DNA of 64,000 nucleotides from Lepidodermella squamata. Its lineage: Eukaryota; Animalia; Gastrotricha. A program made the position numbers and the translations under genes. Positions within the stretch are counted from its first letter, which is position 1; each line of letters opens with the position of its first letter. Positions 37,890-64,000 of this stretch are shown piece by piece. The DNA lies in NCBI GenBank assembly GCA_047495785.1, contig JBLDXI010000029.1, positions 3,472,001 to 3,536,000 of the forward strand. The letters are read 5' to 3'. The notes under the pieces are model-generated. The model was not told the origin of the DNA. It did not search any database and worked only from the letters and a program-made list of their open reading frames with translations.

Positions 37890-38583
37890 GTCAGGCGAAT
37901 CGAGTGCATTTTGAATGGTAACGCCATGACGTACAGCCGCGGAGATACACGTTAGAAACCAGTTTCGACGCACACACGCACCACAAAAGTGGTTCGGCTA
38001 CGAACCATTTCTTTGGAAAATCACAGAAAAATCAATTTCGTTCCGATTTTTGCAAATCAAGTGTCATTTTAACAGGCGCAAAATTCCCTACAAACGCAGT
38101 CTGGTTGTCAAAGGAACCCCAGCGATAGCGTTGAGCGCGCTCAAACGAACGCTATTCACAAGCTAATAAAAATACGACAAGTTGCGCGCGCTAGTGTGTG
38201 CGAGATTTCGCCAAGTAATAATATTTTTTTTCAATTATTCGCACTCATAAACAATAACCGCTGCTGAATCAGGCGTTGTCAGGCGAATCAAGCGCATTTC
38301 GAATGGAAACGTTGTGATGTACAGCCGCGGAGATACACGTCAGAAACCAGTTTTGACGCACACACGCACCACAAAAGTGGTTCGGCTACGAACCATTTCT
38401 TTGGAAAATCACAGAAAAATCAATTTCGATCCGATTTTTGCAAATCAAGTGTCATTTTAACAGGCGCAAAATTCTCCACAAACGCAGTCTGGTTTTCAAA
38501 TAAACGCGAAAAAGAGCGATGAGCGCGCTCATATAAACGATATTTACAAGCCATTAAATCTTTGTGTGCCTGTGTGTGCGAGG
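37890..38583 (+). repeat. Tandem array 2, ~1.8 units, hybrid of the 390- and 398-bp variants
   Basis: First unit has the gtgcattttg..gttagaaacc variant; second has the gcgcatttcg..gtcagaaacc variant. Confidence 0.9.
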
Positions 38584-39496: not shown

Positions 39497-39816
39497 GAAA
39501 AACGGGCCACAAGAAAATTGGTGGGCCTGGAACGGACGTTTTTCATCAATTAGAAATGTAAAAAAGGCGATATCACCCCTTCCGTAGAGTTCCCCTCTGA
39601 AGAAGGGAACTTTACCGCCCCTCGTTCACGAAGTTCGAATACAATATAAACAAAGAAAGTATTTCATTCAACAGCACTTAAAAGTCGAACAAAAATGATG
39701 AGGGTGCATAAAAAGGAAGCACGGAGAAACTCGGCAGAAAAAATGGAGCCCTCGAACGGTTTGTGAGTGAGGCTGTAAAAAGCTGTTTGACAGTTGAAAC
39801 ATCGACAAATTGCTAA
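39497..39816 (-). repeat. Inverted internal copy of element A's 3' UTR/terminal module (pairs with 55501-55823)
   Basis: Reverse complement is alignable over ~320 bp including the gttccc..gggaac hairpin; the terminal CTGGA is not intact. Confidence 0.92.
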
Positions 39817-39824
39817 AGAGCAAT

Positions 39825-42800
39825 TCACTCGTGCGCAGGGCACGGCAGGTCATAAAAATCCCGATAGAAATCGGGCTCTGCGGCTTTCAGTTTCGTTAAC
39901 TGCGCCTTCAGCTTGTAAGCCTCATAGACAGGAAGGCCGCAGTCTAGAAATTTTTCCAGGCCGAGAAAGGCTCGGAACGTTGTGATTTTATTTTGTACAT
40001 ACTTCTTCTTGAACGTAAACCGTTCGTCGATATACTGGAAAAAATCTTTCTTCGATTTTATAAGCTTGTCAGCCTTAAGGCACTTGTAAATTTTTTCAAA
40101 TGCCTCGCCCATCAGCGATTCCTGTCTCAGGTGAAGTGATTTCAGATGAGCGGAAACCCGCTCCATGTTAGCGATGATCACAACTAAGCTTTCCGTGTCG
40201 TTGACGCCGTCGGAGTCCACGACGCCAACGTCGAAGGCCGTTTTAGTGGACCGGGTTTCCAGAAGAAGCCGTTTGAGTCCACTGATGGTACTGACATCGT
40301 ACTTCGTACCATTCGCCTGTCAAATCAAACACATGGTAATTATAATGAGGGTTTAAATACTGGGTTTAAATACCTCGAAGAAGTCAAGCGGCGTCCCCGC
40401 TTTTTTACGCGGTGTCTTGCTCGCCTTTTTGCCGTCTTCTTTCGTTTTAACGCTGTCAGAGTTAGCGCAATTCGCGGCCGCGCCGGCTTTTCTATGACCG
40501 ATTTTTCGACCGCCAGGAATGTCATGCTCCGTGACGAATTTGCGCACAGCCTCGATGAGGTTTTGCTGACGTTTGCTGCCGCTTTTAGGAAGATGGGAGC
40601 ACTCAGCAACGAATTGAACGGCTTTAGCCAGTACTTCAGGCGCATAACCGTCACCGACAGCTGGAAAGGAAAGTAAGTGGAACAGAAAATTCAAACTCGA
40701 TCCGATTTTTGCAAATCAAGTGTCATTTTAACAGGCGCAAAATTCTCCACAAACGCAGTCTGGTTGACAAATGAACCCCAACGATAGCGTTGAGCGCGCT
40801 CAAACGAACGCTATTCACAAGCTAATAATATTACGCAGAGTCGTGCGCGCGCTAGTGTGTGCGAGGTTACGTCTAGTAATGAAAATTTGTTAATTATTCG
40901 CATTTATTGGAGCCAGTTAACAATAACCGCTGCTGAATCAGGCGTTGTCAGGCGAATCGAGCGCATTTCGAATGGAAACGTTGTGATGTACAGCCGCGGA
41001 GATACACGTCAGAAACCAGTTTTGACGCACACACGCACCACAAAAGTGGTTCGGCTACGAACCATTTCTTTGGAAAATCACAGAAAAATCAATTTCGATC
41101 CGATTTTTGCAAATCAAGTGTCATTTTAACAGGCGCAAAATTCTCCACAAACGCAGTCTGGTTGACAAATGAACCCCAACGATAGCGTTGAGCGCGCTCA
41201 AACGAACGCTATTCACAAGCTAATAATATTACGCAGAGTCGTGCGCGCGCTAGTGTGTGCGAGGTTACGTCTAGTAATGAAAATGTGTTAATTATCCGCA
41301 TTTATTGGAGCCAGTTAACAATAACCGCTGCTGAATCAGGCGTTGTCAGGCGAATCGAGCGCATTTCGAATGGAAACGTTGTGATGTACAGCCGCGGAGA
41401 TACACGTCAGAAACCAGTTTTGACGCACACACGCACCACAAAAGTGGTTCGGCTACGAACCATTTCTTTGGAAAATCACAGAAAAATCAATTTCGATCCG
41501 ATTTTTGCAAATCAAGTGTCATTTTAACAGGCGCAAAATTCTCCACAAACGCAGTCTGGTTGACAAATGAACCCCAACGATAGCGTTGAGCGCGCTCAAA
41601 CGAACGCTATTCACAAGCTAATAATATTACGCAAAGTCGTGCGCGCGCTAGTGTGTGCGAGGTTACGTCTAGTAATGAAAATTTGTTAATTATCCGCATT
41701 TATTGGAGCCAGTTAACAATAACCGCTGCTGAATCAGGCGTTGTCAGGCGAATCGAGCGCATTTCGAATGGAAACGTTGTGATGTACAGCCGCGGAGATA
41801 CACGTCAGAAACCAGTTTTGACGCACACACGCACCACAAAAGTGGTTCGGCTACGAACCATTTCTTTGGAAAATCACAGAAAAATCAATTTCGATTTGAT
41901 TTTTGCAAATCAAGTGTCATTTTAACAGGCGCAAAATTCTCCACAAACGCAGTCTGGTTGACAAATGAACCCCAACGATAGCGTTGAGCGCGCTCAAACG
42001 AACGCTATTCACAAGCTAATAATATTACGCAGAGTCGTGCGCGCGCTAGTGTGTGCGAGGTTACGTCTAGTAATGAAAATGTGTTAATTATCCGCATTTA
42101 TTGGAGCCAGTTAACAATAACCGCTGCTGAATCAGGCGTTGTCAGGCGAATCGAGCGCATTTCGAATGGAAACGTTGTGATGTACAGCCGCGGAGATACA
42201 CGTCAGAAACCAGTTTTGACGCACACACGCACAACAAAAGTGGTTCGGCTACGAACCATTTCTTTGGAAAATCACAGAAAAATCAATTTCGATCCGATTT
42301 TTGCAAATCAAGTGTCATTTTAACAGGCGCAAAATTCTCCACAAACGCAGTCTGGTTGACAAATGAACCCCAACGATAGCGTTGAGCGCGCTCAAACGAA
42401 CGCTATTCACAAGCTAATAATATTACGCAAAGTCGTGCGCGCGCTAGTGTGTGCGAGGTTACGTCTAGTAATGAAAATTTGTTAATTATCCGCATTTATT
42501 GGAGCCAGTTAACAATAACCGCTGCTGAATCAGGCGTTGTCAGGCGAATCGAGCGCATTTCGAATGGAAACGTTGTGATGTACAGCCGCGGAGATACACG
42601 TCAGAAACCAGTTTTGACGCACACACGCACAACAAAAGTGGTTCGGCTACGAACCATTTCTTTGGAAAATCACAGAAAAATCAATTTCGATTTGATTTTT
42701 GCAAATCAAGTGTCATTTTAACAGGCGCAAAATTCTCCACAAACGCAGTCTGGTTGACAAATGAACCCCAACGATAGCGTTGAGCGCGCTCAAACGAACG

Positions 42801-44820
42801 CTATTCACAAGCTAATAATATTACGCAAAGTCGTGCGCGCGCTAGTGTGTGCGAGGTTACGTCTAGTAATGAAAATTTGTTAATTATCCGCATTTATTGG
42901 AGCCAGTTAACAATAACCGCTGCTGAATCAGGCGTTGTCAGGCGAATCGAGCGCATTTCGAATGGAAACGTTGTGATGTACAGCCGCGGAGATACACGTC
43001 AGAAACCAGTTTTGACGCACACACGCACCACAAAAGTGGTTCGGCTACGAACCATTTCTTTGGAAAATCACAGAAAAATCAATTTCGATCCGATTTTTGC
43101 AAATCAAGTGTCATTTTAACAGGCGCAAAATTCTCCACAAACGCAGTCTGGTTGACAAATGAACCCCAACGATAGCGTTGAGCGCGCTCAAACGAACGCT
43201 ATTCACAAGCTAATAATATTACGCAAAGTCGTGCGCGCGCTAGTGTGTGCGAGGTTACGTCTAGTAATGAAAATTTGTTAATTATCCGCATTTATTGGAG
43301 CCAGTTAACAATAACCGCTGCTGAATCAGGCGTTGTCAGGCGAATCGAGCGCATTTCGAATGGAAACGTTGTGATGTACAGCCGCGGAGATACACGTCAG
43401 AAACCAGTTTTGACGCACACACGCACCACAAAAGTGGTTCGGCTACGAACCATTTCTTTGGAAAATCACAGAAAAATCAATTTCGATTTGATTTTTGCAA
43501 ATCAAGTGTCATTTTAACAGGCGCAAAATTCTCCACAAACGCAGTCTGGTTGACAAATGAACCCCAACGATAGCGTTGAGCGCGCTCAAACGAACGCTAT
43601 TCACAAGCTAATAATATTACGCAGAGTCGTGCGCGCGCTAGTGTGTGCGAGGTTACGTCTAGTAATGAAAATTTGTTAATTATCCGCATTTATTGGAGCC
43701 AGTTAACAATAACCGCTGCTGAATCAGGCGTTGTCAGGCGAATCGAGCGCATTTCGAATGGAAACGTTGTGATGTACAGCCGCGGAGATACACGTCAGAA
43801 ACCAGTTTTGACGCACACACGCACCACAAAAGTGGTTCGGCTACGAACCATTTCTTTGGAAAATCACAGAAAAATCAATTTCGATCCGATTTTTGCAAAT
43901 CAAGTGTCATTTTAACAGGCGCAAAATTCTCCACAAACGCAGTCTGGTTGACAAATGAACCCCAACGATAGCGTTGAGCGCGCTCAAACGAACGCTATTC
44001 ACAAGCTAATAATATTACGCAGAGTCGTGCGCGCGCTAGTGTGTGCGAGGTTACGTCTAGTAATGAAAATTTGTTAATTATCCGCATTTATTGGAGCCAG
44101 TTAACAATAACCGCTGCTGAATCAGGCGTTGTCAGGCGAATCGAGCGCATTTCGAATGGAAACGTTGTGATGTACAGCCGCGGAGATACACGTCAGAAAC
44201 CAGTTTTGACGCACACACGCACAACAAAAGTGGTTCGGCTACGAACCATTTCTTTGGAAAATCACAGAAAAATCAATTTCGATCCGATTTTTGCAAATCA
44301 AGTGTCATTTTAACAGGCGCAAAATTCTCCACAAACGCAGTCTGGTTGACAAATGAACCCCAACGATAGCGTTGAGCGCGCTCAAACGAACGCTATTCAC
44401 AAGCTAATAATATTACGCAGAGTCGTGCGCGCGCTAGTGTGTGCGAGATTTCGCCAAGTAATAATATTTTTTTTCAATTATTCGCACTCATAAACAATAA
44501 CCGCAGCTGAATCAGGCGTTGTCACGCGAGTCAAGCGCATTTCGAATGGAAACGATGTGATGTACAGCCGCGGAGATACTCGTTAAAAAACCAGTTTCGA
44601 AGTGGCCAGGAACCATTCATGGCGTTTTTGGTGTTCATCATATTTTGTAACCCCATTAATAGAAATGAATTAACTAAGTTGAATCGTCACAGGAAACTAA
44701 CGTACCATTCGAAATTTCGCCATCTTCGACGGTGTTGGCCTCCGATCCTCCCGCCTCGCTGTCAGTCTCCATCATCACCTCATCATCACTTTCATAGTTT
44801 TCGGACATCGATTCGCTCAT
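39825..44820 (-). CDS. 297-aa accessory protein: acidic N-terminus, Lys-rich NLS-like middle, helical C-terminal domain (exons 44820-44706, 40660-40374, 40316-39825)
   Basis: Donors G|gtacgt and GAG|gtattt and acceptors ttccag and tgacag are phase-compatible, giving one open frame. Confidence 0.72.
40683..44600 (+). repeat. Tandem array 3, 398-bp unit, ~9.8 copies
   Basis: Equivalent positions at 40857, 41255, 41653 ... 44041 (period 398). Confidence 0.98.
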
Positions 44821-45792: not shown

Positions 45793-46065
45793 ATGACGCA
45801 TTCCGCTGATGACTGCAATACAGATACTCCTACACCTACTACTGCTCGACCTATTCCACCAAAGCTGAACCATGATGACTCAGGAATAATGTATCTTAGA
45901 GGATTCCAGCACCTCAGTGAGCCTTACGACAGCTATCTCGTCAAGTATTGCTCCGGGAAAGAAACCAAATATATGCCTCTCTTGCACCACGTTTTTCTTG
46001 CCAGCACTGAGGTTTCGCCGTGGAAGCTTTTCTACACGACACACAGCCCCAAACCGAGTTCCTGA
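45793..46065 (+). other. Mini-ORF made of three scrambled Rep-derived peptides
   Basis: LNHDDSGIMYLRGFQHLSE, SYLVKYCSGKETKY and SPWKLFYT match the RepHel segments LNHNSSDMLYRRGFEHISE, SYLVKYCAGKEVRY and SPWQLFYT. Confidence 0.7.
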
Positions 46066-46278: not shown

Positions 46279-49200
46279 ATGTCTCGAAAAGACCCTTTCA
46301 AACCGCGTAAAGGCAATAGGACTTGCACTTGCAGCATCAAGGGATGTGGCCAAATTGGAGTCGATAGGCGGACACATTGCTATGTCTGTGAGAAGCATCA
46401 TGAAAAGCCGTTTTGTCGCATTTCTACACCCGTGTTGAACGATCAAACACCTGCCACGTCCGTTCCTCACGTTGAATCTACTCATTCATGTATTAACTTT
46501 ACAATCAGCCGTACATATTTGAATTTTTGTAGCTTTAGCTGCTACCGCGATCCCGCCAAGGAGATCATATGCTGAAGTGTTGACAGCACATCAATGCCCC
46601 GATAGTTCTCCAAGCGCTGAAAAACTCATGCGCCCTGATGGCCGCAACTCTGCATCATATCTAAATCCTGAAGATTCAAGTTACTTTCTGGCTTGCAGGA
46701 AATTCAAAGATACAACTTTATTTTTACTATTTTAGCCATTACCACTGCGCATTTCGATGATTGCGGCGAAGCCGTTCCTAATGAAGCGCTGCCGTCCTCA
46801 AGCTTTTCGTCCTCTTCTAACACGGAGTGGTTACGCGAAGCAGCAAGGCTCAACCATCTGCAGCTTGTCGACAATGTTGGCAGGGGTGATTGCCAGTTTT
46901 TATCCGTCAGTGATGCTGCAAGGCAGCATGGGTTCAAGTACTCCTTCCTTGAATTAAGGAAGCTGGCGCAACAGCAGCTGCTCACCCGCGCGTATGACTC
47001 TTTTATCGCGCCTGACCCGTTAGTCCTTCAACAAGCGAGAAATAATGGGCAGCCATTGCCTTCGACCACTCCTGATGAGCTCGTACGACGTATAGCTCTG
47101 CCTGCTGCCGAGAATGGAGACTGGGGTGACAACGTTTCCCTCCGGGCACTGGCGGATAGCTTAAATGTCACAATAGCATTATTCGACTCCGAAAACAGGT
47201 TTACATTGCAGCGCTTTGGCAGTGTTGGTCCGACTCTCTATATTGGTAGAGATCATTTGGCTTCGCATTATGTGGCTATGCTGAGAGACGAAACGCCCAT
47301 GTTTCAACTTTCTTCTTCCGTCGACAACCGATCAACAACTTCTGTGATAGACGAAGTTGGAAGAGATTCTACTAATAACATCTCTTGCTTCGAAGCGGGA
47401 ACTTCGTCAATTCAAACAACTGGCGCGGCCTCCTTTTCTGCTGGGCAGCCCATTAGCCCACCAAACTTAGGAATAAATTCTTCCAAAGTTACATGTCAGT
47501 CAAATGGAAATAGCAACCACAATCCTTCGCGTCATAAAAAATCAGGTCAGTTTCATATTTCGGCCTTTATTAATTCCTTCGTCAATGCACTTTTATAGAT
47601 GAAATTGCCGCAATTAATGAAGACCAAGATCTTCCTCCTTTGTCTCCTACTGAAATATCATCCACTTCACTCAGTCGCAGGCGCGCAGTCGCAGTCGCAG
47701 GCGCAGTCCAGTCTCAAACTAGAAAAGAAGTTGGCCCAACCAGATCAACAACTTCTTCAAAAATGAGTAACCAGGATCGTATTACTGCGGACACAACCAG
47801 TAAGTCTTCCACCTACTTAACAATGTCAATTTTTAGTTCAGTCGTTATTAATGCTCATAATAAAGCTACTTCAAAACAAGATGCTGCCTCTGATCAACCT
47901 CAGTGTTCTCTATGCAGAAGAAACGCTACTTCTTTTTATCCTCTGGCACTACAGATAATCTGTGAGGAAGTAACGGTGAAGAAGTACGGTGCACTAGCTC
48001 TGCGATCGAAACATCGAAACCTTGTTTTGTGCAACTGCTGCGAACTTCATTTGCTGAAAGAAAACAAAGCGCTGTCGTTCGAGGACGCGTGGCCTGCGGT
48101 ATTGTATTCTATTTTTTTCGACGACAAATATCGGGAGGTAGCTGAACACCTCAAGCACATTGTTCCTTCGACGATACGGCAATCTTGGGCTGTTGAAATT
48201 GGCAAAACAGGGCGCGATCTTATGACAGCAGAGGAGCCTTACTTCACTGATGTCAGCGATTACTATCACAACATGGAGGAGCGAGCTTACCGATCTGCTG
48301 GTATGAAAGCATTGCATCTTTATTTTTAAAAGCATATCCCTTTCATACAGGTGCGTTTCGACGTCAGATGGACGACTTTTGTTGCCCCCAGGTGAAGTGT
48401 GCTCTTGGGTGCTGGAACTGGCCTGAGTTTTGTCGCAAGATCCCGGTCAATCACCTAATTAACCACCTTACACGCTTGCGCATCGGCAACTCTAACCACC
48501 GGTTGCTAACAGCTGCCCGACGTGACTATCCGAATAAACCTAGCATATTTCGCGGCTGGAAAATTTCGCCTGCAATGGTCGTCGACAGATCACTCGGCTT
48601 ATGCTTTCTTGTATGTGATGGTCATAACGACGCTGAATTGAAGAAGCGATTTTTTCACATTCCGATAAATCCCGCTCACGACGACACTCTTCCACAACAG
48701 CTCGAAATCGTTGCACCGGTTGTTACAAGTCCGAACATTGTTAGAAAAGGCAGACTTGGTACGTACTCCTCATCAGTTCCAGTAGTTTCAGTCGTTGGCG
48801 GGTATCAAGGATTGAGTAGCTTTACTATGTCCCCGACGGTGAACACTCCACCGATCAGTGGCGATTCGATAGCACCGCAATTGATGGCTGCTTATCTACG
48901 TCCAGAGATTCAGCGAAGCTTTGCAGCAAAATGTGATATATTTCATGTTTCGACTCTATTGGCTGCCTTCCAATCCCAATATGACGCTCTGAAATCGCTA
49001 GCCGATGCGGCGCTGGAAGGAGCAACGTTTATGGATGTAGCGGATGCTTTTCATACGTGGGCCATAATCCGAAAGGACGCAGTCGGGCCTAGTGGCGCTG
49101 TTCCAAATAACAACAACGACTTGAATAAGCAGTCTATCAAAGAGCTTATTATTAACGCTGTCCACAACGCTGACGATTTCGGCATGAGACCCACGGCTGT

Positions 49201-52200
49201 AAAGCTCCGCTCTCCTAACGAAAGGGTTTCACTGTTTCAAAATATATTAAATGCATTGCTCCACTGTCGACCAGTGCATAGAAACGCGCTTTCACATCAT
49301 GTAACATCAAGCGGATTTCGAATCGGGAATTTGCCCTCCATCAAACTTCTATCTATGGCTTCGTATATTTCTGCCGATCAGCCGACAGCGATAAATGCAC
49401 GGGCCTTTAGCAACCAGCTCTGGCTGGCAAACGATGAACACAAAAATACCGTGGACAACACGCTAAATATCTTGACATCACTCTGTCCAAAAATAGTTGA
49501 TGACGAATTGAATCATACTGGCAGCGAAATCATCGACGTTCAACTGCGCATTGGGATAGACGAGTCTTCGCAACAACGCATTTCCAGGAGCACTTCCAGA
49601 CAAGGTACTATTCTACGTTTCATTGATATAGCGCCCTTTTCACGTCCATGCAACTTATTGATAGAATATTACTTTTCTGCATGCATACATCTCACCGTCT
49701 TTATTTCTCTCTCCGTCAGGTTCAAGCAGTCATCTGGTTGTCAACATCAATGATGAGGAGATCGCTTTGTCATCATACAAGCCAAACGCCGATATCACTT
49801 TCTGCAAGGCTGATTCTTCTCAAAAAATTTCTACTTCCAACTTTCCTCTTTACGTCAATGGTTCGCATCTTCTGTACTTACAAATCGAGTTACCTCGCTC
49901 TGATGGCGATCGTCCTGCAAGCAAGGTCCTGATGAGGTGGAACGGCGACTTTAATGGTTGGTGGTCGATCAACTGCAACGGTGATGTTACCAAAGAGACA
50001 CAACTATCCGCTGTTACTGGGAATGTTTTGTACGCGATTTATGCCACACCTGGCGACAGGTCTTTTGAGCACCGAGCAATACTGTCATCAATTGGTGGTC
50101 AACGAATTGCTGTCTGCAAATCTCATGTACTTAAACACGATGGCAACGGTTTTATCAAAGTGCCGCGACAACTAGCCGTTAAATGTTGCGCAATTTTGCG
50201 ACGCGGACGACGTCCTTTACAGTGTGGGAAAATGGCGTATCTCAGGTGTCCAGATGGTATTCAGCATGGCCTAACCTGCCAGTCAGGCATCTGCAACGAC
50301 TGCTATGGCAAATTATCTCGGGACAAGTCGCATCGAATAGGTCAGCCGTCAGCCGTCAGGGCTAAAAATTACCGTCAACGCCGTCGGCAATTGACGGACG
50401 ATGAAGACGGCGTTGATCCGAGCATTTCCATTGAAGAAGAAAGACGGCTGCGAGGCGAGCCGGAACTTGAAGACCCACTGCAAGTAGAACCTTTGCCGGT
50501 GGTTTGGAACGAAGATTGCCAAACGGATAACGATGTTTTGTTGAACGAAGTTATCGACCAAGAAGAAGCTCTTCCGTCCACAATGACGTTAACAAATCCC
50601 CATTCTAAGATTCCCAGTAAGTATCTGCTTACAAATTATTTTCGTATACTGGAGCGAAGGCGTGCTCCACATCAAAGTGCACGTTCTCATTTTCTGCTGC
50701 AACAAATCGTACGTGCGGGAAATGCACCCGCTTCATCACTGCTATTCCCGGAGGCTAACACTCTGCCATCGATATTTTACAATTCTTACAAAAAATCAGT
50801 CCCTGGAGCTTTACCTCACCACCTGTATTGTTCGCCGGATTCTAACAAATTTCGTGGTATTGCTAGCTTGAGTGCTCACAACAAAGTGCGAGTAGCTGAC
50901 GGTGATTTAGCATCGTCGAGAACTTGGCAATCTCTTCACTGGGCTTTTGACACTACCGTTGCTGAGAAACTCAATCACAACAGTTCCGATATGTTGTATC
51001 GTCGAGGATTCGAGCACATTAGCGAACGAGGCGGATTTGGTATCGATGCCGCTCAAACTGCCCTCGAGTATGATGATTTCGACTCGTCGCGCAAAATCAA
51101 GGAGCTTGCGGCGACTATGAAGGCGTCCCCCTGGCAACTGTTCTATACATTTACTGCCAACGACAGAGGCTCTCCGGGTTTGAGGCCATTCATCAATCGT
51201 TTGAAGATTGCTTCTCAGCTGACAACACCAGCCACTGCCGAAGACAGAACCAATTACACCTTGAAGCAGCGTGAAGTTGATGCCTTGGAAATAGATGACA
51301 AATTGTTCCAGCAGCTCTACGAGTCTAATTTCTTTCTTATCAACAGCATTTGGCGGCGAACTATCTATCACGCGATTCGGTTCATTGAAAAAAGCCCGTC
51401 TAAGTTGTTGGGAGAAATCGACTCGCATTTTTCTCGTATCGAATTCCAAAGTCAAGGATCGCTGGGGAACAAATGCCATGTACATGGTGGTGTGTCAGTA
51501 AAAAGCCGTGACGGCGACGAACCCGTATCTCATAAGATTTGCCTTGATCCTGATCTGTTCTTTTCCGAACAATTCGGCACTGATTACGATTCCTTGCTGA
51601 AGGATGGCCTCGTCGAGGACTATGACGACTTCGAAGATCTTCGAAAGTTTATGGCCGTTGTTACGCGTCACGTTTGCTCCAATGCTGGTGAAAGGTGCCT
51701 TAAGCAGCGAGGCGAGAACGGCGAGGAGATATGCAGAGTTCGAGCACACCCGAACAGCGAAGAATACTGGTACGAAGAAAAGCTCGACCTATATGAGGAA
51801 TCGGTGTATGAGAAACTTGAGTCTTGTGGTTTAGCTGAACGTATCCCTGACTCTGCTGAGGGTCATGTCAAATGGCGATTAAAGCATGACAAACTAAAAG
51901 CAGGCGTTCATCATTATCCTCTTCGCAACCAAGAATGCGGCGTTAAAATGTTGCCTACAATACCTCTTTTCGCCATCATGATGCGCTGTTCAAGCAACAT
52001 TCAAGCGTGTGACGAACGTTTCATGGTTAGCTACCTCGTCAAGTACTGTGCCGGAAAAGAAGTACGATACAACCCATCCGTAAAAGCTACCAAACACGTG
52101 AGTGAAGTTGTTATTGATTCGGCTAAAGCACCTTTGCCCAATCTAAAAATTACTGGCGTCGCTCTTAACGAAGAAAAGCGTCAAAAAGCGCTCACTAACG

Positions 52201-55200
52201 TCATTCAGACGAACATGATGGAGGTAGCTACAACGGAAATGCATTGGGTGGTTGCAGGCTTCCCGTATACATATACTAACGTCGACCACGTTCATGTTAA
52301 CACTCAACCGCCGGAACATCGATTGGCTTATAAATCTAGAGCCCCACGGACAAAGCTTCAACCAGGTAGGACTTCAGCTCTCACAAATAAAACTTGTCAA
52401 ATAATGTTATTTCAGGTGTCGATGCATCCTTCGATCCTAATGCCGCACGCTACAAACTCAACCAAATATGGCGTTTGTTTACAGTCGATCAAATACAGTT
52501 GGCACGAGAATACGTCATGTCAAAGTTGAGGCCAGGTGCTACTGAGCGGTTCAACATAAGACCGCCTGAGCTACTGATCTTTGACAACCTCGAGATTTTC
52601 CACCTCATATTCATTGCGTCAACTGAAACAGCTAAGCTTCCGCTGCATGAAACATTTCATCTTTCACCGTTCAAAGATGCGCTCAATCGATATTATCGAA
52701 TTCGCAGCAACAGTATACTGGCGGCAATTCAGTTCTTGCGAACGAGGCCTGCAGATCATCCTGCCCGACAGCTACTGCTTGACCTTTTCGAAAGGCTCTG
52801 TGAAGGCGATCAGGAACTCACAAAGCGATACGTACATCAAACAAACGCTGTTCGAACAGTTACTGTCCCGTCAAGTGTGACACCCTACAATCGTCAGAAA
52901 TTTTTGTATCACACGATTATGACTTTGGGCTCCATGGAGAATGAGTTGCAAACCTTTTCTTCGTCTAACTTCGCCGTCAACTTCACGAATGCGCGCCTCG
53001 TTACTCCTCCGGAGGAGTTCGACGGTGCGCTAGTTCAGCCATCTTTGCGTGCGGAGGTTGATGACATTTTTCGCCGTCTCATCATTGAGCAACTTGTTTG
53101 GTTACCCGTTTCCGCAAAGAGGCTCGGCAACTATATCACCAAAACTTGGGAAACTCTTCAAGACTACTTCTTTGGTTCGCACAGCAATGATCACGATGTG
53201 CCACCTATTTCCAGTTACGCTCTCAAGAGCCAAGCCAACAAGAAAATTTTCGACGCTGAGCGGATCTTTAAAGACAGCTTGCTTCAAACAAGCCATGCTC
53301 AACTGGCGCATAAAATGATCCTACCTTCTATAGACTTGTTTCGCAGTGCAATGCCTGAAAATCCTGTCGAATGGAAACCTGCTATTCTGCCTTCGACAGG
53401 CTTGTTTCCTTTAGCTTTTTAAATTCTATTTTTATGTTCACTGTTCACAGGTCAGTCTTCTGAATCATTGAAACAACAGCAGTTAGCCCTCAGCCATGGC
53501 TTGAACAAGATTGACGATCTGTTGTGCCATCGAAGTGCCTACAAGCATTCTGTTTTTGTCGGCCCACCAGGCGCTGGTAAAACCTTCTTGGCTCAAGTTG
53601 CTGCTCTGTACGCACTTGGCAAAGGCTTCAACGTTTGCCTCACGTCGCTCACATCGGAGAGAGCAAGATCGCTTGGAGGCCGTCATCTTCATCTTGTTTT
53701 TCCGATGCGTGTCCAGCAATCGTCCTACTCGCACGCCATGTTAGAGGCACAGGAATGCATCCGATCGCTCGGCAGAGACCCCGTTAAGGCAGAGTTACTA
53801 TACAGAACCGATGTGTTCGTGATCGAAGAAATCGGCTTGGTCTCCGCCGAGATGTATGCATTACTAGACGCTGTCATGAAATATGTCATGGGAAATGACT
53901 TAAAGTTTGGTGGCAAGCTGGTTATCGCTACCGGTGATCACGCTCAGCTGCAGCCAATCAATGGTAGGCCTTTCTGGCTGTCAACCAACTTGATGTTTTC
54001 TTTCGACGTCGTTGTGCTAACTCATTACGTTCGTTCCGCCGAAGACGAAAACCTCCAAGCAATCCTTCAAATCCTTCGACAGCCAATCATCGACGAGCGA
54101 CAGCGAAACGTTGTCTGTCACGTTTTGTCACAGAAGGCACGCTTTTTTCCTTCATGGGATAAGGTGCCTGAAGGCTTGATTCGTCTCGTTACAACTCGCA
54201 GCGCGGAGAAGAAAGTAATCGACGATTACCTCGAGAAAAAATCACAGCAAACCGATGTCATCAAATGTCTAGCTATCGACGAGTTTCAGAGAAGTTCGGA
54301 CAACTGGACGGAGACGACGAACAAGGCGCACATAAAGAAACTTGATCGTGTTTGCTTGGAGCCCAAAGAACTGGTGCTTTTTCTCGGGGAAATTGTCTGC
54401 ATGACTTACAATAACATCGCGTCAGATCCTGGTCAGACTTTCTCGCAGGGGCAGCTTGGTGTTATTGTTTGTCTACCTGAAGACATCGCCAACAAGAAAG
54501 CGACTGTTTCTGTTCGCCTGATTCCACCAGGTATTCGCCCGTCGCATGATGTTGACGAGAATTGGCCGGTTATCAAAGTGCAGCGACATCATGGAATACC
54601 CATTATCATCGGGTCAGACGCCATGCGAGCTCGACGGTTACAGTTCCCCTTCCGTTACTACATCTGCACCACGGTGCATCGGATAATGGGCGCAACCGTC
54701 GAGGAAGGTGTTGCCATACAAATATCGGACGTCGACAAACAGTTTCGAATGTGGGAGAAGGCTCAGTTTCTTGTGATGGTTTCTCGCTGCCGTTCGCTAA
54801 ATCTCATCGCCTTCGTGAGTGCTAGCAAAAACGACACCCTGAGAGCGATCAATGCCATCATGATGAAGGATAGCCCATATGAAAAGGCTGTTGTTGACCG
54901 GTTGTGTCGATTGGATATACTGTCTAATCGCGCAGAATCGGTTGACGTTGGCTCGCCGGTTTTTTATGTCACCAATTCAATCTCGCCCTCTGTTGTGAAC
55001 GGTGTAGTCTACCACATCGTTTCCCAAACAAGACCGTTCGCGTCTTACATCGGCGAAACAATGTTCTCAGCTGAAAAGAGACTCAGGCAACATAATTCTG
55101 GCGGTGGCGCTAATTTCACGCGTGGTGATACGTGGTTCCTTCTTGGTATCGTACATGGATTTTCTGATGCGCGAGCGCGAAAGACGTTTGAGAACAAGGT

Positions 55201-55477
55201 TCACAGGCGACTAACTCCACAGCTTTTCCCTTGGCAAGTCCGTCTCGTCATTCAGGAGCTTGTTGTTCAGCTGAACAAGTTGGTGCCTGCTTCACAGCAA
55301 CTGACCATCGTCAACTTCGGCCGGGTCGACGAATTGCAAGTTCGTGCGTTAGCGGCGAATCGCAACCAATCTGGACCTTTCGTTTTTATCAAACAGGTTT
55401 CTTCACTTTGCCTTACTTCTTCAGCTTCTTAATTTTTACTTACACTACAGGATGAAAGCGGCGAAGACGATTTATGA
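46279..55477 (+). CDS. RepHel transposase, ~2,900 aa: Cys/His-rich N-terminus, OTU protease, Cys-rich regions, HUH Rep, PIF1-family helicase, SLX1-like GIY-YIG nuclease
   Basis: OTU GRGDCQF..WGD..HY; Rep motifs LFYTFTAN, RIEFQ..G..HVHG, YLVKY; helicase GPPGAGKT, IEEIG, FGG..GDHAQLQP, TVHRIMG.T, QFLVMVSR; nuclease VY..YIGET..RLRQHN.G.GA..T..W..GF..FE. Phase-consistent exons 46736-47545, 47599-48300, 48351-49604, 49720-52365, 52416-53399 (GC donor), 53451-55396, 55451-55477; the first two exons are less certain. Confidence 0.92.
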
Positions 55478-55689
55478 GACGATTTTCTTTTACTATGTCA
55501 TTAGCAATTTGTCGGTGTTTCAACTGTCAAGCAGCTTTTTACAGCCTCACTTATGAAACGTTCGAGGGCTCATTTTTTTCTGACGAGTTGCTCCGTGCTT
55601 CCTTTTGATGCACCCTCATCATTTTTGTTCCACTTACAACTGCTGTTGAATAAAATACTTTCTTTCTTTATATTGTATTCGAACTTCGT

Positions 55690-55827
55690 GAGGGAGGGGC
55701 GGTTAAGTTCCCTTCTTCAGAGGGGAACTCTACGGAAGGGGTGATATCGACTTTTTTTTTACATTTGTTACTGATGAAAAACGTCCGTTCCAGGCCCACC
55801 AATTTTCTTGTGGCCCGTTTTTCTGGA
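55690..55827 (+). other. 3' terminal module of element A
   Basis: gggaggggcg, hairpin 55707-55728, aaggggtg..gacttt, a small subterminal hairpin, then CCGTTTTTCTGGA; homologous to 63343-63503. Confidence 0.8.
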
Positions 55828-58800
55828 TGATTGCGCGAACCGTGTAACGGTCCTGCGGCGGCAGCCGCGCGAACCGTGTAACGGTCCTGCGGCGGCAGCC
55901 GCGGCTTAGGCCTTTGGCTCGCGCCTCCGGCCGCTCGCCGGCCTAAAGTGAGGAAAAATGCACCGCAACCTGCCACTTTTAGAGGGCGCCCCCCCTTCCG
56001 CTCATCGTAAAAATACGGGAAAAATACCGGCGGATAGCGCTTCTCAAATAACCCCGAACAAAGATTTTCTGGACAAATCCATCGAACGGCTGATTTTTGG
56101 CGATTTTTTATTCATGAAAATTTATAATGAGCTCGCTTATTATTCATTGCCTTGACCGAACGGCACGAGGTCACGGCCGCCGGCGCGATGACCCATGTTA
56201 ATTACACCGCGGCGTTTATTGCGCGAGAAGAGGTCGATTTTCCTTGCAATTAATGTTATGGCGGGTTTGGCGCCCCTCCCCCGGGGGGAGGGGCGCATCA
56301 TATAATTTGCCTCAATATTTTCTATCGAACAGTCCAAACCCGGTGATTATCGGATAAACGGTTAATTTTATACGAATTTTCAAACATGAAAATGTCACAA
56401 AATGAGGCCCTCAAAAATCAGGTATAAATATTTCGACACGCGGGCAACACCCTTTCAGGTGCGGAATTTGTCGTGTTCGAAGTTGATTTCTAGCTACTCA
56501 GAAGCACGGCGGATTTTTTTGTACTAAAACCGCCGCAAGATTCGCAATTTTCCCTTTGACTATAGCGTTTGGCGCGCGATTGATTTTTAGTGAAAATAAA
56601 AATTTCAATTTTTCCGTCTTCCGTCAAATATTTTGACGCCTTTCCCCGATAGCGCTCATATTTGAATACACGTAAAATGTAGCGAATTTTCCGCTGAATT
56701 TTTAGAGACTAAGCACGTCATCATAGGCTTCATGGTTGTCGAACAATAAGAGTTGCGGCAAAATGCGTTTTTCAGGCGTTTTTTAGCGCACCTGCGGCGC
56801 TCACACTCGCAGTCGGCGACGATTTCTGTCAAATTAAAAACACATTTACCTGTTTTGAGTGCACATGACAATTATACTGTCTTGACGTAGAATTTCAAGA
56901 CGAATCGAACGAGACTAGTCCCATCGTCGTAGCACTCATAGTTTTTTAGCTATAAGAGGCGTGGTCGATCCACCTTAAAATTTCGAAATTTCGATGTTTT
57001 TGTGAATTTTTTACGACTATTTGGAATATTCTCGGTGTGATATAATAAGCGTGTCTGGTGCAACATTTGACGGGCTTTCGAATGGTGAAAACCGCATGTC
57101 CATAACTTACAGCGTTTTCAGCCAGTAATCCGCGCGGTAAAAACTGTGATAAAAACCAAACCAAATTATTTTATAAAATTTCAATTAATTATTCCGGATA
57201 ATATTTAACTGCGACTGCAGTGGCAAGTATTAATGTCCAGTAGGTAACTCGACGCACTCTATTGAATGGTATCGGCCCTACTTTCACAGGACGCACCCAT
57301 TTGACGCCACACCTCTTGTCGATGTCAAATTTTTCAAATCTTTTGACCAAGTTTGCACTCTCATTTTGATTGTTTAGTGGACTTGCACTCATTGAATGAT
57401 GATTTTAACGCTAAAAGCATAGTCGGCCGGTCACTTTGAGACCTGACTCGTTGTTGTAGCCCTCGTACTTCTGATACTATTCTGATAAAATAAAATAATT
57501 TATAAAAGGGATCGGACGACTGAAATGTTTCATTCCTGAGTCATAGCAACGATCAATTGACCAATCAGCGTGCGCGCCAAAGTTACAACTTTTTAGTGGT
57601 TCCACAATGAAAGCGTCCAGTGAAAATATAACCACCTATCCCAGTGCAGAACTTCACGGGCTATCTAACGGTCAAAACCCAAATTTCATAGCTCCCACCG
57701 TTTTTTGCGACAAATCCACGCGGTAAAAACTGAGATGAAAACAAACCAATAAATTTTTGAATTTCGATTTATTAATTCCCGATAACATTTAACTGCGACT
57801 GCAGTGACAAACGTTACTGCCCAGTAGGTAACTCAGGTAGAGTTACATTCTTAGTGTGCGCACTCTTACTTTTGTCATTTCAAGCGCAATGTTTTACCGC
57901 CTCCCTTTTTTGTGCACAAATTATTCTGCGTTCACTATACGCGGAAATTTACCAGGAATCGAATGAGACTAAGCACGACGTGCCAGCTATCACGGCTGTG
58001 GAGATATTTCGGGCACAACAGTTCAAAAAAATCAGGAAGAGTCCGCCTTAAAACTTGAAAATTTCGAAATTTTGCAAATTTCTTAATTATTATCGCGGCA
58101 ATCTGGAAGCGAGGCACCCTATAAAATTGCCTAGCTCCCATTTTCACAGGACGCACTCATTTGACAGGGCAAACCCTTGTCGAGTCAAACTTTTTTAATC
58201 ATGATGAATTTTCACCAGCAATTTGAGGAGAAATTATTATAATTTGAAGGAAATTATTTGAAAGATTTTAAGAAATTTTTTCTTAATTTACAATTTACAA
58301 TAATTTTCAAAAAAATTCGATTATTCAAATCAACTATCGAGCATATTTAGCAATTTGTTATTTATTCATTTTTGGAATTTACCAATTGCGAATCGCCACG
58401 ATTAACAATCCTGTGTACAGTTTGACCAAACATTAACTAATCATTGTTTTTCTTTACAGCTGAGCTATGAACACGGATGAATGGCTCTTAAATAGATAAA
58501 ATTAATTAAAATTAATTCATTAGGCGTTGGAATAAAAATTTTTGAAAAATTGAAAAATTCAGCTACCGATTCAGCTTCCGAAGGCACCGTTGCAGCCAAC
58601 AGCCAGAGCTTTTTTCTGACGCAATATGCACAATATTTATATTTTATTGTCATGTCTCCTTACCCGTTGGAGCTTAGTTTGAGAGTGTGAAAATAAGTTA
58701 TTATTTGGGGGCCAGGAGATTTTTATTGAGGGTAATTAAGGTTTGCGCCGTCGCCGCTAACTGGGTCATGACCCAGAATATGAGAGGTAAAGCAATAATT

Positions 58801-59918
58801 TATTACGATAGACGATATATCGACCTTGCAGACAGTCTCGCTCGGAAGGGCTTATTTTCAAGCTTGTGACCCTCAAAAACCAAATAAAAAACCCAAGCTG
58901 TCGTCAAATTTTTCGACACCTTACCGCGATAGCGCTCCTATGTGACTACACGTAAAATGTAGCAATTTTTTAGAGACTAAGCACGTCATTATAGGCTTTA
59001 TAGTTGTTGAACTATATGAGGCGCGGCAAAACGCGTTTTTCGTCATATTTCATGAAAAGGTTATAAAGCAATTTTCAGAGAAATTATTTTCATTTGAAGG
59101 AAATTTCTTTCCAATTCCTGCCTTGGCCGCAGAGATAATTTATCGGCCCATTATTTATCTGAATTACCAATCCAAATTTACCAATGGAAAAGCGTTCCGA
59201 ATAAAATTGATAGTTAAAATTCAAGAAATTTAAAAAAATTATGCAAATCATTTTGAAATTTTGAAATTTTGAAAAATCAAGCAAAAAATAATGTGGTCTG
59301 GCCAGCTCTCCTTCTAAAGCCAATCGCCTGCAGTATAGCAGCGACACATTGAACGTAGTTTTTTCTCCATTTTCGAAAGATAAAGTATGTATGGTAATTT
59401 TTTTGCCTCGAATTTTATTAATAACTCCGTAACCATGAGACATTGTTTTGAGCGGGTTTTACCAGTCGATAGATCTAGTCTGTTGTAAACTTTTCCTAAA
59501 TTCTTGTTAAATTTGGATGAAATGTGAGCAATTCATGACGAAAATGCTTCTTGGGATTTTTGGTGAAAAAGTTCGGTACGGTTATAGCCGCTACTTAATT
59601 ATCATGCCTCGCGCCCGCCGCTCTCGGCGTTACAATGAGGAAAAATCGTATGCACTTGAGCGTTTCTCCGAGTTAGTTAATAGGATATCCTCGGAAAAAA
59701 TTATAAAAAATACCATCGTGTAGAGCATACCCGAAACCCTTATGGGCAAAGATTTTTCAGAAAGATCGGCCAGAAGGCTGACTTTTGGCGATTAGCCCTC
59801 TTATCTTCGGCGTTATTAGCTGCGCGGTAAAACCAAGTATAGGCAACATTTGCCATTTTAACCGCAATTTATTAACGCTTCCCGCTTTTTGTGCGCAAAT
59901 TATCCTGCGTCCACTATA

Positions 59919-61018
59919 TCGTCGGTACAGCGGTTAAAAGTGACAAATACAGAATTTTTCAAAAATGAGATTTTTAATGTTTCTAGCTTAATTTCATAAG
60001 GCCGACATAATGGCGTGGTCAAATTTTACAAGCTCGGCAAAATTCTCGAAAGTGCCAAGTTTTATGAGATTTCCTAGCGCGATTAAACATGCATGGCATG
60101 TTTACTGAAAAACCCCATGTTTATTCGTCCGCTACATTGTGCTATGTTATTACATCTCTTTTCCAAAAAACAGAGAAAATCTCTAATATTGCTGAGTGGA
60201 AACGTCATTTTGAAGACAATTTTATGGTACCTTGTTATCGTAGAGGTTGATAGCCGTTTAGGCTTTTCTGTTAATCCTAATTGGGTTAATCGGCTGGGCA
60301 TCATGATTAATATTATTCAAGGATTGATAGTTGTTCCTGCCGCCTATGTATGTAATGTCAGATCAGTAAACATATAACTTGAAATCTTCTTTGAAAATCT
60401 TAATTCTTAGAGATTTAGGACCACAATCCTAGGACCACAAATTTTGTGAAAGTTCGAGTGACGGTGTAGATTGAGCAAATCCGGAGCTAAGAATCGAAAT
60501 TTTCAGATGTTTTTCATAACGACGTGTGATTACCTCCCAGCAAATGTTCAACCCTGTTAATGGAAACAATGGCCTGATTCGTCATTCCAAACAAGTGAGA
60601 TAATGCTTTAACAATTTCGTAAGGAGAAGCGTTGCAAATCAGCAATGCTTAAAGTTCGGATGTTCCAATATTTCACTACCTGAATTCCTTGCTTTCTAAA
60701 CAATTTGCGAAAAAGGTCAAAAAAATATATAGATTTTCTTTTTCCATAGCGAAAATAAATAAATAAAAATAATAAAGCGAAATATCGATTTCTTCAAGTC
60801 ACACTTTTGCCTTGAAATCGCGAGTAAAAGTGCCATGTCTCAGGTAAGATGACAGGTGCGCATTTTCGTTCAAATCCGAGTGCGCCATAATGTTAGTCGG
60901 TTATTATTACCCTAGAAAATTCCGAAATGAATGAAAAATAATAATTATATAATTGAAAAATTATATCCTGTAACATTTTGAAAATCGCACTTTGCACTTT
61001 AGACCGCTGTACCGACGA
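59919..61018. mobile_element. Degenerate Tc1/mariner-type element nested in element B
   Basis: TIRs tcgtcggtacagcggt / accgctgtaccgacga with TA TSD; it splits a repeat that is intact at ~57930 (cactata|cgcggaaatttacc). Confidence 0.85.
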
Positions 61019-61882
61019 TATGCAGGAAATTTACCACGAATCGAATGAGACTAAGCTAGTTGCTAGCTATCACGGTTGTGGTGTTATTGCGGGCGCAAAA
61101 GTCCAAAAAAATCAGGAATAGTCCACTTTAATACTTGAAAATTAAGAAATTACGCAGTTTTTGTAATTTATCTTGCGGCAACCTGGAAGCGTTCTGGCAT
61201 GATTAAATCACAGTTTTTTACGGGCTTTCTAACGGTGATATCCGCAAGTTCATAGCTACGGTCTTCTGCCAATAAGCCACCCGATAAAATCTGAGATTAA
61301 AAAACAAACGAAGGAGTTTTTGACAATTTAATCTTTCAATTCCGGGAATTTTTGCCTGTGTCTTGAATGAAAAAGTCATGTTGAATAACTTTTGAAGTTT
61401 CATGAAAAGGTGATAAAGCAATATTCAAAGAATTATTTTTATTTGAACAAAATTTCTGAAGAGCAATCTGCCATGGCCAGGGATAATTTATCGGCCCATT
61501 TTTTATCTGAATTCAAAATTATTTCCAATTTTATTTCCATTAGTCCTATGAATCATCGAGCATTCAGTTCCTCAACAGAATTGTTCCTTCTTCCTTAACA
61601 TTTACCAATTGAAAATCGTTACGAATAATCGTACGGCTGGCTGATGGTGTCGCGTGTTTTAGTTCGTAAGAAAAAAACATCACTTACATCAATATCTAGC
61701 CATATTCACTTTGAGCCTACCCATAACCAACATTATTTCTATTTTACAGCCCTGCGAAAACGCTTGACAACCGTGTTGCCGGTATTGAGCGTGCTGTCTT
61801 GGGGAAAATTCAATTCAATTTTTCAATTTCATTTCATTTTATTTTCGAGGTACTTTTCACTATTAATATTGTCATCGTCGTT

Positions 61883-62242
61883 ATGCGAGACCTCGCACCT
61901 ATCAAACCTCGAGAGGGCAAAAGTAGCACGTGCAATGTTGCTGGGTGTAATGTAGATGGCGACTTGGCTACATCTCATTATTGGGACGCTGTCAACTTAG
62001 CCTTCGATATCTCTTCTAATGAACGCCTGAACCACAACAGCGCTGACATGTTGTATCGACGAGGGTACGAATCTATAAGTGAAGAAGGTGGCTTTGGGGT
62101 CGATGGTGCCCAGAGAACATTGGAATATTATGACGATTACGGCTCATCGCAGAAAATAAAGGAGCTGGCGGCTTCAATGAAAAGTGCTCAAATCTCTCTT
62201 TTCTACACGTTTACGGCTGAGGAAAGTGGATCCCCTGGGTAA
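61883..62242 (+). pseudogene. Internally deleted RepHel remnant of element B
   Basis: PIKPREGKSSTCNVAGC (compare PFKPRKGNRTCTCSIKGC) fused in frame to DGDLA..LNHNSADMLYRRG..LFYTFTA..GSPG. Confidence 0.85.
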
Positions 62243-63503
62243 CACCACTCAAATTAGCCGGCCAATTATGAGTACCGAGTCCGGATCCTTCAAAGGTTAC
62301 GAGTGAATAACGAGTCGAGCCACCGATCGAATCGTCTTTTCTGTTTATGCAAGATGCCATTAAATTTTTTGCTTCGGAAAATCATTGTTATATGTCGAAT
62401 TCGGGGACGATGTCTAAATAAAAATGTCCACCACGTTTCCTGATAATTTAATTTGTGTAATTATTTATCTCGACTTATTTTGTTTCGTCCCCAGACCGGC
62501 ACGAAATAAGCTGAAATGTGCTGGTTTCATCAGCTGAAATACGTTGTAATAAGGCATGGCTAGTTCGTCGCCGCTGAAATACGCTGGAGCCGATTTCTGG
62601 GATGCGCACTTTTCAGCCGATTTTCGTCAAGCGATGTTGATTTTCTATCCATCAACTCACTGCGCTGAAATACGCTGAAAAAAGCACGTGGCGACATCGA
62701 CAAGCTAAAATACGCTCATATCCGTAAGACGCATTGCGCGAAATTCAAATCGGTTTTCCAGGACTTGGCAGTTGGCAGACGCTGAGTTTCAGTTTATTTT
62801 CCGTACAATTTCAGCTTGATTAATTTTTAGCTGGAAATTGCTGGAGTTTTACGCTAACGCAGTAGCTCTCAAACTATCTTCGCTCGCGGTCAAAAATGGC
62901 GGCCGGCTGACGACCTTCCCGGCCGCATTGCCTCTTGAACCCTCAACCGGCTGCTTGATAATGATAAAATAGGACCTTCCCGGCCGCACGCCTGTATAAT
63001 CGAGGATCGAGGATTGAAGTTTTCGAGTGCGCTTTTGAGCGGATTGGTTATTAAATTAGTAGCATCAGTAGCATCAGCATCAGCAGCATTTTTATCTTTT
63101 GTTTTTTATGGCTCTCTGCCGATTCATCCTTCTATGTGCTCATTAAACGCGAACGCACGGATTATTATGTTTGCGCCTGAAGATTTTTATTGGGGGTAAT
63201 TAAGGTGCGCGCCGTCGCCGTTAACTGGGTCACTCGACCCAGAAGATGAGAACTAAAGCAATAATTTAAAACGATATCGACAGTGAATATTCTCGCTCGC
63301 AAATTAATTTTTTTCAGAATATTTCACATGTATTTATTTTTGGGGAGGGGCGATTGAATGTTCCCCTTGAAGATGACCCACAAGGGGAACTGCAAGGGGT
63401 GGTTGACTTTGAACCCTTGTGGAACATTTCTATTGGGCCCAGCGCCAAGCTGCCAGATACTAAAAAAATTCACGCAAGATTTCCTTGCATCCGTTTTCCT
63501 GGA

Positions 63504-64000
63504 TTCGGCTCGAAAATCAGCGTGCAGTCAAGCTTATCGAAAGGAAACATCTCAAATTTGAACGACTGGCATTTGGTGTCAATGCGCCGAATTCCTACGT
63601 ACAGACCACGTGGCGGTGTCGAGATAGAAAATGGTGTTATCGTTATCTCATCGCCGCCTTCGATATCGAAAGGCAGAGGATTCTTCACCGCGTTAAGGTG
63701 GCTCAGGTAAGGATGCCAGTAACTTTTAGCTTCAACGTAAAATTGAACTTTATCGAGACCATATTTATAGTTGCATAATTTAGCGAGTTCCGGGTGATTT
63801 TCGGCCATTTGCCAGCAGTTCATAACGGGGCATGGGTAGTTCCATGAGAATATGAAATAGACAAAAATTGACAGCGTTTTCGCGAGATCGTTGATTTCGA
63901 GTATTCGAACAAGTAGTAGGGTCAAGTCTATTTTAAATGGATCACGAAATTCGTTGAGAACTCCATTTTCAAAGGGCAAATTAAGGACTCGAACGGGTGG
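63504..64000 (-). pseudogene. Cys-loop receptor copy 2, 5' part (extracellular domain; continues beyond the window)
   Basis: High identity to 29470-29960; contains CQSFKFEMFPFDKLDC. Confidence 0.9.

Follow-up and report, generated by a model that had tools for sequence, protein, structure and literature searches.

How do two diverged rolling-circle elements come to lie head to tail, with the last base of one directly beside the first base of the other? The question is raised by a stretch of 64,000 nucleotides (nt) from the gastrotrich Lepidodermella squamata (GenBank assembly GCA_047495785.1, contig JBLDXI010000029.1, positions 3,472,001 to 3,536,000 of the forward strand), in which a block of two Helitron-like elements, here called A and B, splits a Cys-loop receptor gene within one of its coding exons. 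Throughout, the window means this whole stretch, and positions are counted from its first letter. The original prediction for this DNA held that A and B are two different elements joined without a spacer, and that such elements target the termini of their relatives. We confirm the junction: two diverged Helitron-like elements of a non-canonical kind do meet end to start, exactly and without a spacer.

The limits of the insertion can be read from a paralogous empty site in the same window. Self-comparison of the window showed that 27641-29958 is paralogous to 32342-33742 together with 63498-63997, and the counterpart of the insertion site is an uninterrupted exon formed by one minus-strand open reading frame (ORF). 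A three-way alignment and direct reading of the letters place the empty site at ...CCCTGAT^TCGGCTCG..., between 29468 and 29469, and the filled site reads ...CTTGAT/GATTGCGCGA...(29.7 kb)...CGTTTTCCTGGAT/TCGGCTCG. The insertion is one block, 33756-63504 (29.7 kb), which starts with GATTGCGCGA and ends with CGTTTTCCTGGAT.

These end sequences also define the junction. Exact copies of GATTGCGCGA are found at 33756 and 55829 only, and of CGTTTTYCTGGAT at two places only, ending at 55828 and 63504; because each of the two motifs has these two occurrences and no others, 55828 is a 3' end and 55829 a 5' start, with no spacer between them. The letters at the junction are ...GTGGCCCGTTTTTCTGGAT/GATTGCGCGAACCGTGTAACGG..., the stroke falling between 55828 and 55829. 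Longer patterns give the same picture: a gapped pattern of 31 bases from the 3' module matches at 55692-55828 and 63343-63504 only (none expected in shuffles), and a 30-base block of the 5' module at 34029 and 56140 only (again none expected). The 15-mer named in the original prediction has one exact occurrence, at 55823-55837, and one more with a single mismatch, at 33750. The trinucleotide GAT terminates the left flank of the host as well as the elements, so that the boundaries can slide jointly by up to 3 nt and four registers are permitted (T^G, G^A, A^T and T^T); T^T is one of these four, read from the one empty site, GAT^TCGG.

The structural part of the original prediction stands on these data. 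The empty site and the twice-occurring end motifs establish two diverged rolling-circle elements in head-to-tail order and the same orientation, without spacer. They are not a concatemer of one copy: a Rep remnant in B is just 64% identical in protein to the Rep of A. The terminal modules have, as had been proposed, only short blocks in common; they align in islands, and blastn between them returns a single match of 36 nt.

What A and B do share at their ends is a 10-nt leader, a tail of 13-14 nt and hairpins that are alike in geometry and unlike in sequence. At the 5' end, a hairpin with a 5-bp stem and a 3-nt loop follows the leader at equal distance in both elements, with the stem GGACC/GGTCC in A and ACCGT/ACGGT in B: all five pairs are changed on both sides. 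At the 3' end, both have GGGAGGGGCG, a GTTCCC/GGGAAC hairpin, a terminal hairpin of unrelated sequence and then, 13-16 nt later, ...CCGTTTTYCTGGAT, so that the pattern of the module in order is GGGAGGGGCG ... GGGGAACT ... CCGTTTTYCTGGAT. The terminal stems differ (55793-55815 in A, followed by a 13-nt tail; 63474-63488 in B, followed by a 16-nt tail). We found no inverted repeats between start and end: in both A and B, the best local match between the first 120 nt and the reverse complement of the last 200 nt was no better than in shuffled sequences. All pieces of A and B that bear Rep or end modules lie on the same strand, except an inverted partial copy at 39497-39819. An exact end-to-start junction of diverged rolling-circle elements reveals the position at which the transposase cuts, and between these relatives only some 10-14 terminal bases and the shape of the hairpin are conserved.

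The enzyme that could act on such ends is encoded in A. The transposase searches used single ORFs or exons as queries. Rep lies in an ORF of 920 amino acids (49767-52529) that has an HUH motif (CHVHGG) and two tyrosines (Y2, SYLVKYCAGKE). It aligns at 6e-81 to a 1562-amino-acid protein of a related locus (L001), which clears the cut-off of Pfam Helitron_like_N (PF14214); the window ORF alone scores E 0.014. Downstream of Rep, the same gene encodes a Pif1-like SF1 helicase (PF05970, E 6e-12), with Walker A and B motifs in the last exon, and after it a GIY-YIG domain (PF01541, E 3.4e-7) with its key motifs present. The best match of the helicase among solved structures (PDB) is the Helitron transposase Helraiser; solved-structure searches with the Rep ORF alone and with a four-sequence Rep profile gave no match. 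Two introns interrupt the coding sequence. One (52366-52415, 50 nt, GT-AG) joins reading frames, and the other (53400-53450, 51 nt, GC-AG) contains a TAA and falls exactly where three homologues have a gap of 16-17 residues. As the apparent frameshift and stop are accounted for by these introns, the spliced Rep-Pif1-GIY-YIG gene looks intact.

On these grounds A and B are non-canonical Helitron-like elements, of the type with HUH-Rep and Pif1 helicase, that fully fit neither of the described groups. Of the general features of Helitron-like elements, an HUH motif with two catalytic tyrosines, a Pif1-like SF1 helicase and a hairpin near the 3' end are found. The group HLE2, comprising Helentron, Helitron2 and the non-autonomous HINE/DINE-1, resembles A in having Rep and a Pif1-like helicase, a nuclease after the helicase and an OTU domain upstream (features from PMC11417382, PMC4067079 and PMC7492417). 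Also like A and B, its members have a hairpin near the 3' end, palindromes near both ends, internal satellites and decayed non-autonomous partners that share their ends. HLE2 elements insert between T and T (PMC11417382, PMC4067079), with which the empty site of A and B is compatible. Several features set A and B apart from this group, however. HLE2 has terminal or subterminal inverted repeats of 12-16 nt, which A and B lack; Helentron has an AP endonuclease after the helicase, where A has GIY-YIG (neither Exo_endo_phos nor DUF6570, a marker of the group, was found in the window ORFs or in the relatives); the target of A and B is not T-rich; and the Rep of A is highly diverged, as its Helitron_like_N score indicates.

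Canonical HLE1 elements (Helraiser/Helibat, maize helA) are like A and B in lacking inverted repeats and in carrying a 3' hairpin that lies 13-16 nt before the end. They are likewise known for tandem arrays, end bypass, composites with multiple termini and directly adjacent diverged elements (PMC4067079, PMC3288121, PMC5148889). HLE1 is, however, defined by 5'-TC and CTRR-3' ends and by insertion at A^T, and none of the four registers gives A and B both TC and CTRR: with insertion at A^T, they would read TGATT...CTGGA. A and B also lack RPA, and their Rep has no detectable sequence similarity to that of Helraiser. For GIY-YIG in a Helitron-like element we found one published report, the moss HelenSM92 (PMC11417382). 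This HLE2 family from Sphagnum magellanicum has GIY-YIG like A; compared by description only, it differs in its plant host and in its clear short inverted repeats. Bacterial IS91/ISCR elements also use an HUH transposase with two tyrosines, read through their end so as to carry downstream DNA and give tandems, and have as target a short sequence beside one end. Unlike A, these elements are bacterial and have no fused helicase or nuclease.

Two further classes were considered and rejected. Inverted repeats of 326 nt, 15.7 kb apart, had prompted a comparison with Polinton/Maverick elements, but there are no PolB or retroviral-type integrase domains, and the inverted repeat stops 5 nt short of the end of A and sits 5.7 kb inside it. 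The GIY-YIG domain had suggested a Penelope-like retroelement, but a domain scan of the window ORFs detected no reverse transcriptase domain, and an Rfam scan of the whole window gave no family at threshold, hammerhead included. A bacterial origin of the DNA was likewise dropped, in view of animal domains (Cys-loop receptor, glycosyltransferase family 6), introns of 50 nt and proteins of Helitron type; a scan for sigma-70 promoters and terminators, which is irrelevant to animal DNA, returned no terminator.

A word-based protein search recovered seven relatives of the helicase at 35-43% identity and one of Rep at 48%; with the receptor exon as query it returned no match, proteins of the host being apparently missing from the collection searched. 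Five related loci were compared: two from the ostracod Cyprideis torosa (L002, L004), which gives the closest named relatives, two from ENA assembly ERZ26222911 (L001, L003) and one from a JGI metagenome (L005). The loci of the relatives have the same order, Rep followed by Pif1 and GIY-YIG, and no DNA-level conservation of the end motifs was seen at the five. At L003 (1-2625, minus strand; 10001-14030, plus strand), on a contig of 498 kb, a related Pif1 and GIY-YIG gene has retrotransposon genes around it; the lineage is therefore present in another eukaryotic genome as well. An animal Helitron-like lineage with GIY-YIG, end sequences of its own and a spliced, seemingly intact transposase gene is little described, and its transposase is a candidate for biochemistry. 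Diverged elements lying directly next to one another are already known for Helitrons; the lineage and its ends are a new variation on this.

The history of the two elements can be dated relative to the host exon. Both halves of the split exon are still open, and their ratio of non-synonymous to synonymous substitution rates (dN/dS) against the paralogue is about 0.2; the receptor copy was therefore constrained through most of its past and was interrupted recently. The ORF of the upstream half (63470-63979) extends 35 nt into B and then meets a stop. This copy of the receptor gene was probably knocked out recently by the 29.7-kb block. Among the window ORFs we found domains of the neurotransmitter-gated ion-channel ligand-binding and glycosyltransferase family 6 types, with introns of about 50 nt. 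Around the empty site, a local segmental duplication of about 2.3 kb (27641-29958 against 32342-33742) bears the receptor gene paralogues, and next to it are two exons with glycosyltransferase family 6 domains (26011-27634, minus strand).

The decay of B is old. Several internal repeats of B are 77-86% alike, and a piece just upstream of its 3' module is duplicated (58698-58810 against 63162-63276). A third stretch resembling the 5' module lies inside B (Table 1) and marks a decayed internal junction between two B units. Taken together, this third module, the second upstream piece and the 77-86% repeats indicate that B arose by fusion of two or more decayed units that lie on one strand. With repeats diverged to this degree and no long ORFs, set against exon halves that are still open, B had already decayed when the exon was hit, and its decay is much older than the insertion. 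The Rep remnant comes from the region (residues 378-471) that is also represented in a mosaic ORF of A (45793-46065), and its low identity to the Rep of A places B on a different branch of the same lineage. A perfect 34-bp tandem repeat (2.1 copies, 55833-55903) begins 4 nt past the junction, covers the first hairpin region of B and supplies B with a second, leaderless copy of its own start.

How, then, was the junction made? The best-supported answer, which we put at about even odds, is a reading in which the transposase itself made the zero-spacer junction and the A-B pair was then copied as a unit into the exon, likely in one event. A and B keep the same predicted sequences for terminal recognition: at the 5' end the leader GATTGCGCGA followed by a 5-bp hairpin, and at the 3' end a hairpin with CCGTTTTYCTGGAT. 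As these predicted recognition sequences are the same, a Rep of the A type could act on both elements. Rep would nick precisely at the last base of an element, and the 5' end of B would be joined to a resident relative at its terminal 3'-OH. The last T of the element and the T of the host would restore the T^T bond used for insertion. The mirror case, in which A was joined ahead of the start of B, is equally possible. The pair would thereafter form a unit running from the start of A to the end of B, to be copied whole whenever the end signal of A is read through, and it was probably by such read-through copying, in a single event, that the 29.7-kb block entered the receptor exon. B, as a fused element of several units, can move only as a whole. 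The HUH and Y2 motifs of Rep, its 6e-81 alignment, the match of the helicase to Helraiser, the exact ends and the hairpins with paired changes all argue for this reading, and so do the likeness of the host flank to the element end, the shared strand of the Rep and end-module pieces and the decay of B before the exon was hit. End bypass, circular intermediates, tandem arrays and directly neighbouring diverged Helitrons have been reported (PMC4067079, PMC5148889, PMC3288121, PMC6431247), and insertion next to or into other Helitrons, with composites of multiple termini, has been described (PMC4067079, PMC3288121, PMC5148889).

Two independent hits on one phosphodiester bond cannot be chance, and the original prediction had answered that the junction recreates a preferred site. 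There is some evidence to this effect. The host hexamer before the start of A, CTTGAT, and the end of the elements, CTGGAT, are alike at five of six positions, a hint of a target similar to the end of the element itself, and at the right junction of A the site GAT^T is restored, the GGAT of A being completed by the T of the host and followed by unchanged host sequence; all this comes from a single locus and is indirect. The further proposal, that elements target the termini of their relatives and build growing arrays, is plausible in itself, and the third, truncated 5' module in B would fit accretion on the same strand; it likewise has one locus to draw on. Given a recent insertion and an old decay of B, arrival of a ready-made composite appears at least as likely as growth of an array in place. 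The alternative offered alongside it, that A and B moved together after read-through, explains how the pair could have arrived in the exon in one event but does not by itself account for a junction without spacer, and we retain it as the second step of the reading above.

Several observations count against the transposase-made junction followed by joint copying. It is drawn from one locus and one host target. The resemblance of the flank at five of six positions has a chance of about 0.005 at a fixed position, and three of the matching bases are the ambiguous GAT. Exact-pattern scans with the 3' module and the 5' block found no other copy of A or B in metagenome (two scans), genome (one) and viral (one) contigs. 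If B came first, moreover, A would have gone into a T^G bond, not T^T. A more specific version is that the lineage inserts after CTKGAT, much as HUH elements of the IS91 and IS200/IS605 types choose their targets by sequence, so that the CTGGAT ends of relatives would serve as targets and head-to-tail stacks, later composites, would result; this is possible, on the doubtful side. If a resident end is indeed a preferred target, it would provide a simple mechanism for the clustering of Helitron-like elements, for elements with multiple termini and for large composites with satellites and gene pieces.

The rival that survives best needs no targeting of termini at all and regards the junction as the fossil of a circle. 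In the donor, B would have preceded A in the same orientation, the two being separated by host DNA; copying from the start of B past its end to the end of A would yield a circle joining the end of A to the start of B, and a later round, opening at the start of A and closing at the end of B, would leave a permuted composite from which the spacer is lost. Helitrons and Helitron2-like elements are documented to bypass their ends and to form circles whose ends join exactly (PMC5148889, PMC6431247). The common end signals required for action by a single Rep are present in A and B, and B is itself a fused composite. The scheme, however, requires read-through in two successive rounds and the use of internal ends; the window holds no trace of a former B-spacer-A arrangement, and the resemblance of CTTGAT to CTGGAT has no part in it. 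We consider it unlikely.

Growth in place by two or more separate, recent insertions at a host hot spot, CTKGAT^T, with no recognition of the resident element, is a second rival. At the empty site and at the ends of both elements alike, a final GAT precedes a T, and T-T insertion is reported for HLE2 (PMC11417382, PMC4067079). Yet the exon halves are still open, so all the insertions would have to be recent and to fall on the same bond, and a hexamer-like target is present thousands of times per animal genome, so that hitting the same copy twice asks for something more; separate insertions of this kind are quite unlikely.

The repeated GAT admits another model, a 3-bp target duplication in which B was inserted into the duplicated GAT flanking A, and it is only under this model that the junction acquires a 3-nt spacer. 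GAT does stand before the start of A, between A and B, and before the right flank of the host; the empty site is GAT^T and the element end is also GAT, so this single site is compatible with a 3-bp duplication, and an offset nick in the second strand might in principle come from the GIY-YIG nuclease. HUH rolling-circle elements, endonuclease-bearing Helentrons included, are nevertheless reported to insert without target duplication (PMC4067079), and the CT before GAT is also common to both 3' ends, so that GAT reads as part of a conserved tail; we rate a duplication as highly unlikely. An assembly artefact, with a short sequence common to two loci wrongly linking their elements in this repeat-rich region, is extremely unlikely: the end of A and the start of B have nothing in common by which an assembler could be misled, the join coincides exactly with both termini, and the sequences on either side of the block fit the halves of a single host exon.

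Table 1. Positions of the host exon, elements A and B and their parts in the window
Feature	Position	Strand	Basis or details
Uninterrupted paralogous exon (empty site, between 29468 and 29469)	29149-30027	-	Self-comparison, domain scan, alignment
Downstream half of split host exon (Cys-loop receptor)	33406-33741	-	71% amino acid identity to paralogue; still open
Upstream half of split host exon	63470-63979	-	76% amino acid identity to paralogue; still open
Element A, 22,073 bp, Helitron-like, bounded by 5' module and 3' module	33756-55828	+	Empty-site comparison, end motifs
A 5' module	33756-34226	+	Leader GATTGCGCGA 33756-33765; hairpin 33766-33778; inner conserved blocks, e.g. 34029-34064
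390-bp satellite, 4.8 copies, 99% alike	34226-36096	+	Two further units at 37879-38566
Inverted 91% copy of A 3' module (55498-55823)	39497-39819	-	Without the final 5 nt, TGGAT
398-bp satellite, 9.9 copies, 98% alike, related to 390-bp unit	40682-44597	+	Repeat analysis
Mosaic Rep ORF, 90 amino acids	45793-46065	+	Two-tyrosine motif SYLVKYCSGKE; upstream of OTU ORF
OTU-like cysteine protease ORF	46693-47598	+	PF02338, E 7.7e-5, just above Pfam cut-off
Transposase gene, several exons	48368-55432	+	N-terminal part 48368-49753; Rep 49767-52365; Pif1-like helicase and GIY-YIG nuclease 53451-55432
A 3' module	55433-55828	+	GGGAGGGGCG at 55692; hairpin GTTCCC/GGGAAC; terminal hairpin 55793-55815; tail CGTTTTTCTGGAT 55816-55828
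Junction	55828-55829	+	Last base of A, T (55828), directly beside first base of B, G (55829)
Element B, 7,676 bp, decayed non-autonomous relative	55829-63504	+	No ORF above 147 amino acids; at least 2 units
B 5' module	55829-56340	+	Leader GATTGCGCGA 55829-55838; hairpin ACCGT/ACGGT, 3-nt loop, 55839-55851
Third 5'-module-like stretch inside B	59586-59794	+	nhmmer E 1.2e-10; truncated, without leader and first hairpin
Rep remnant in B	61955-62239	+	64% identical to A Rep residues 378-471
B 3' module	63343-63504	+	GGGAGGGGCG; 10-bp hairpin; terminal hairpin GCAAG/CTTGC 63474-63488; tail ending CGTTTTCCTGGAT 63492-63504

The left part of A is itself heterogeneous. The arrays of 390-bp and 398-bp units are about 90% alike over 300 nt and both lie within the left 12 kb of the element; each 398-bp unit holds an ORF of 90 amino acids. 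The inverted copy of the 3' module adjoins, and forms the tail of, minus-strand ORFs within 39825-40694 (39825-40220 and 40340-40694), in which a domain scan identified no known domain; this copy may be what is left of a relative that inserted in the opposite direction, or a 3' untranslated region put to new use. The mosaic ORF upstream of the OTU ORF consists of three separate Rep fragments, one of residues about 398-418, one with the two-tyrosine motif and one of residues 449-461. Because this mosaic ORF, the satellites and the inverted module copy all lie within A, A may itself be an old fusion; the junction with B is unaffected by whether it is.

A small element of about 258 bp with terminal inverted repeats of 32 nt (94% complementary) is present at 21796-22053, and related copies were seen at 57485-57609, inside B, and at 21962-22086. 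Elsewhere in the window, three clusters of long minus-strand ORFs follow one another about 5 kb apart (7404-9252, 12331-14382 and 17830-19667). A Pfam scan detected no domain in the three clusters, which have in common a conserved stretch of 79 nt (at 9057, 14148 and 19451).

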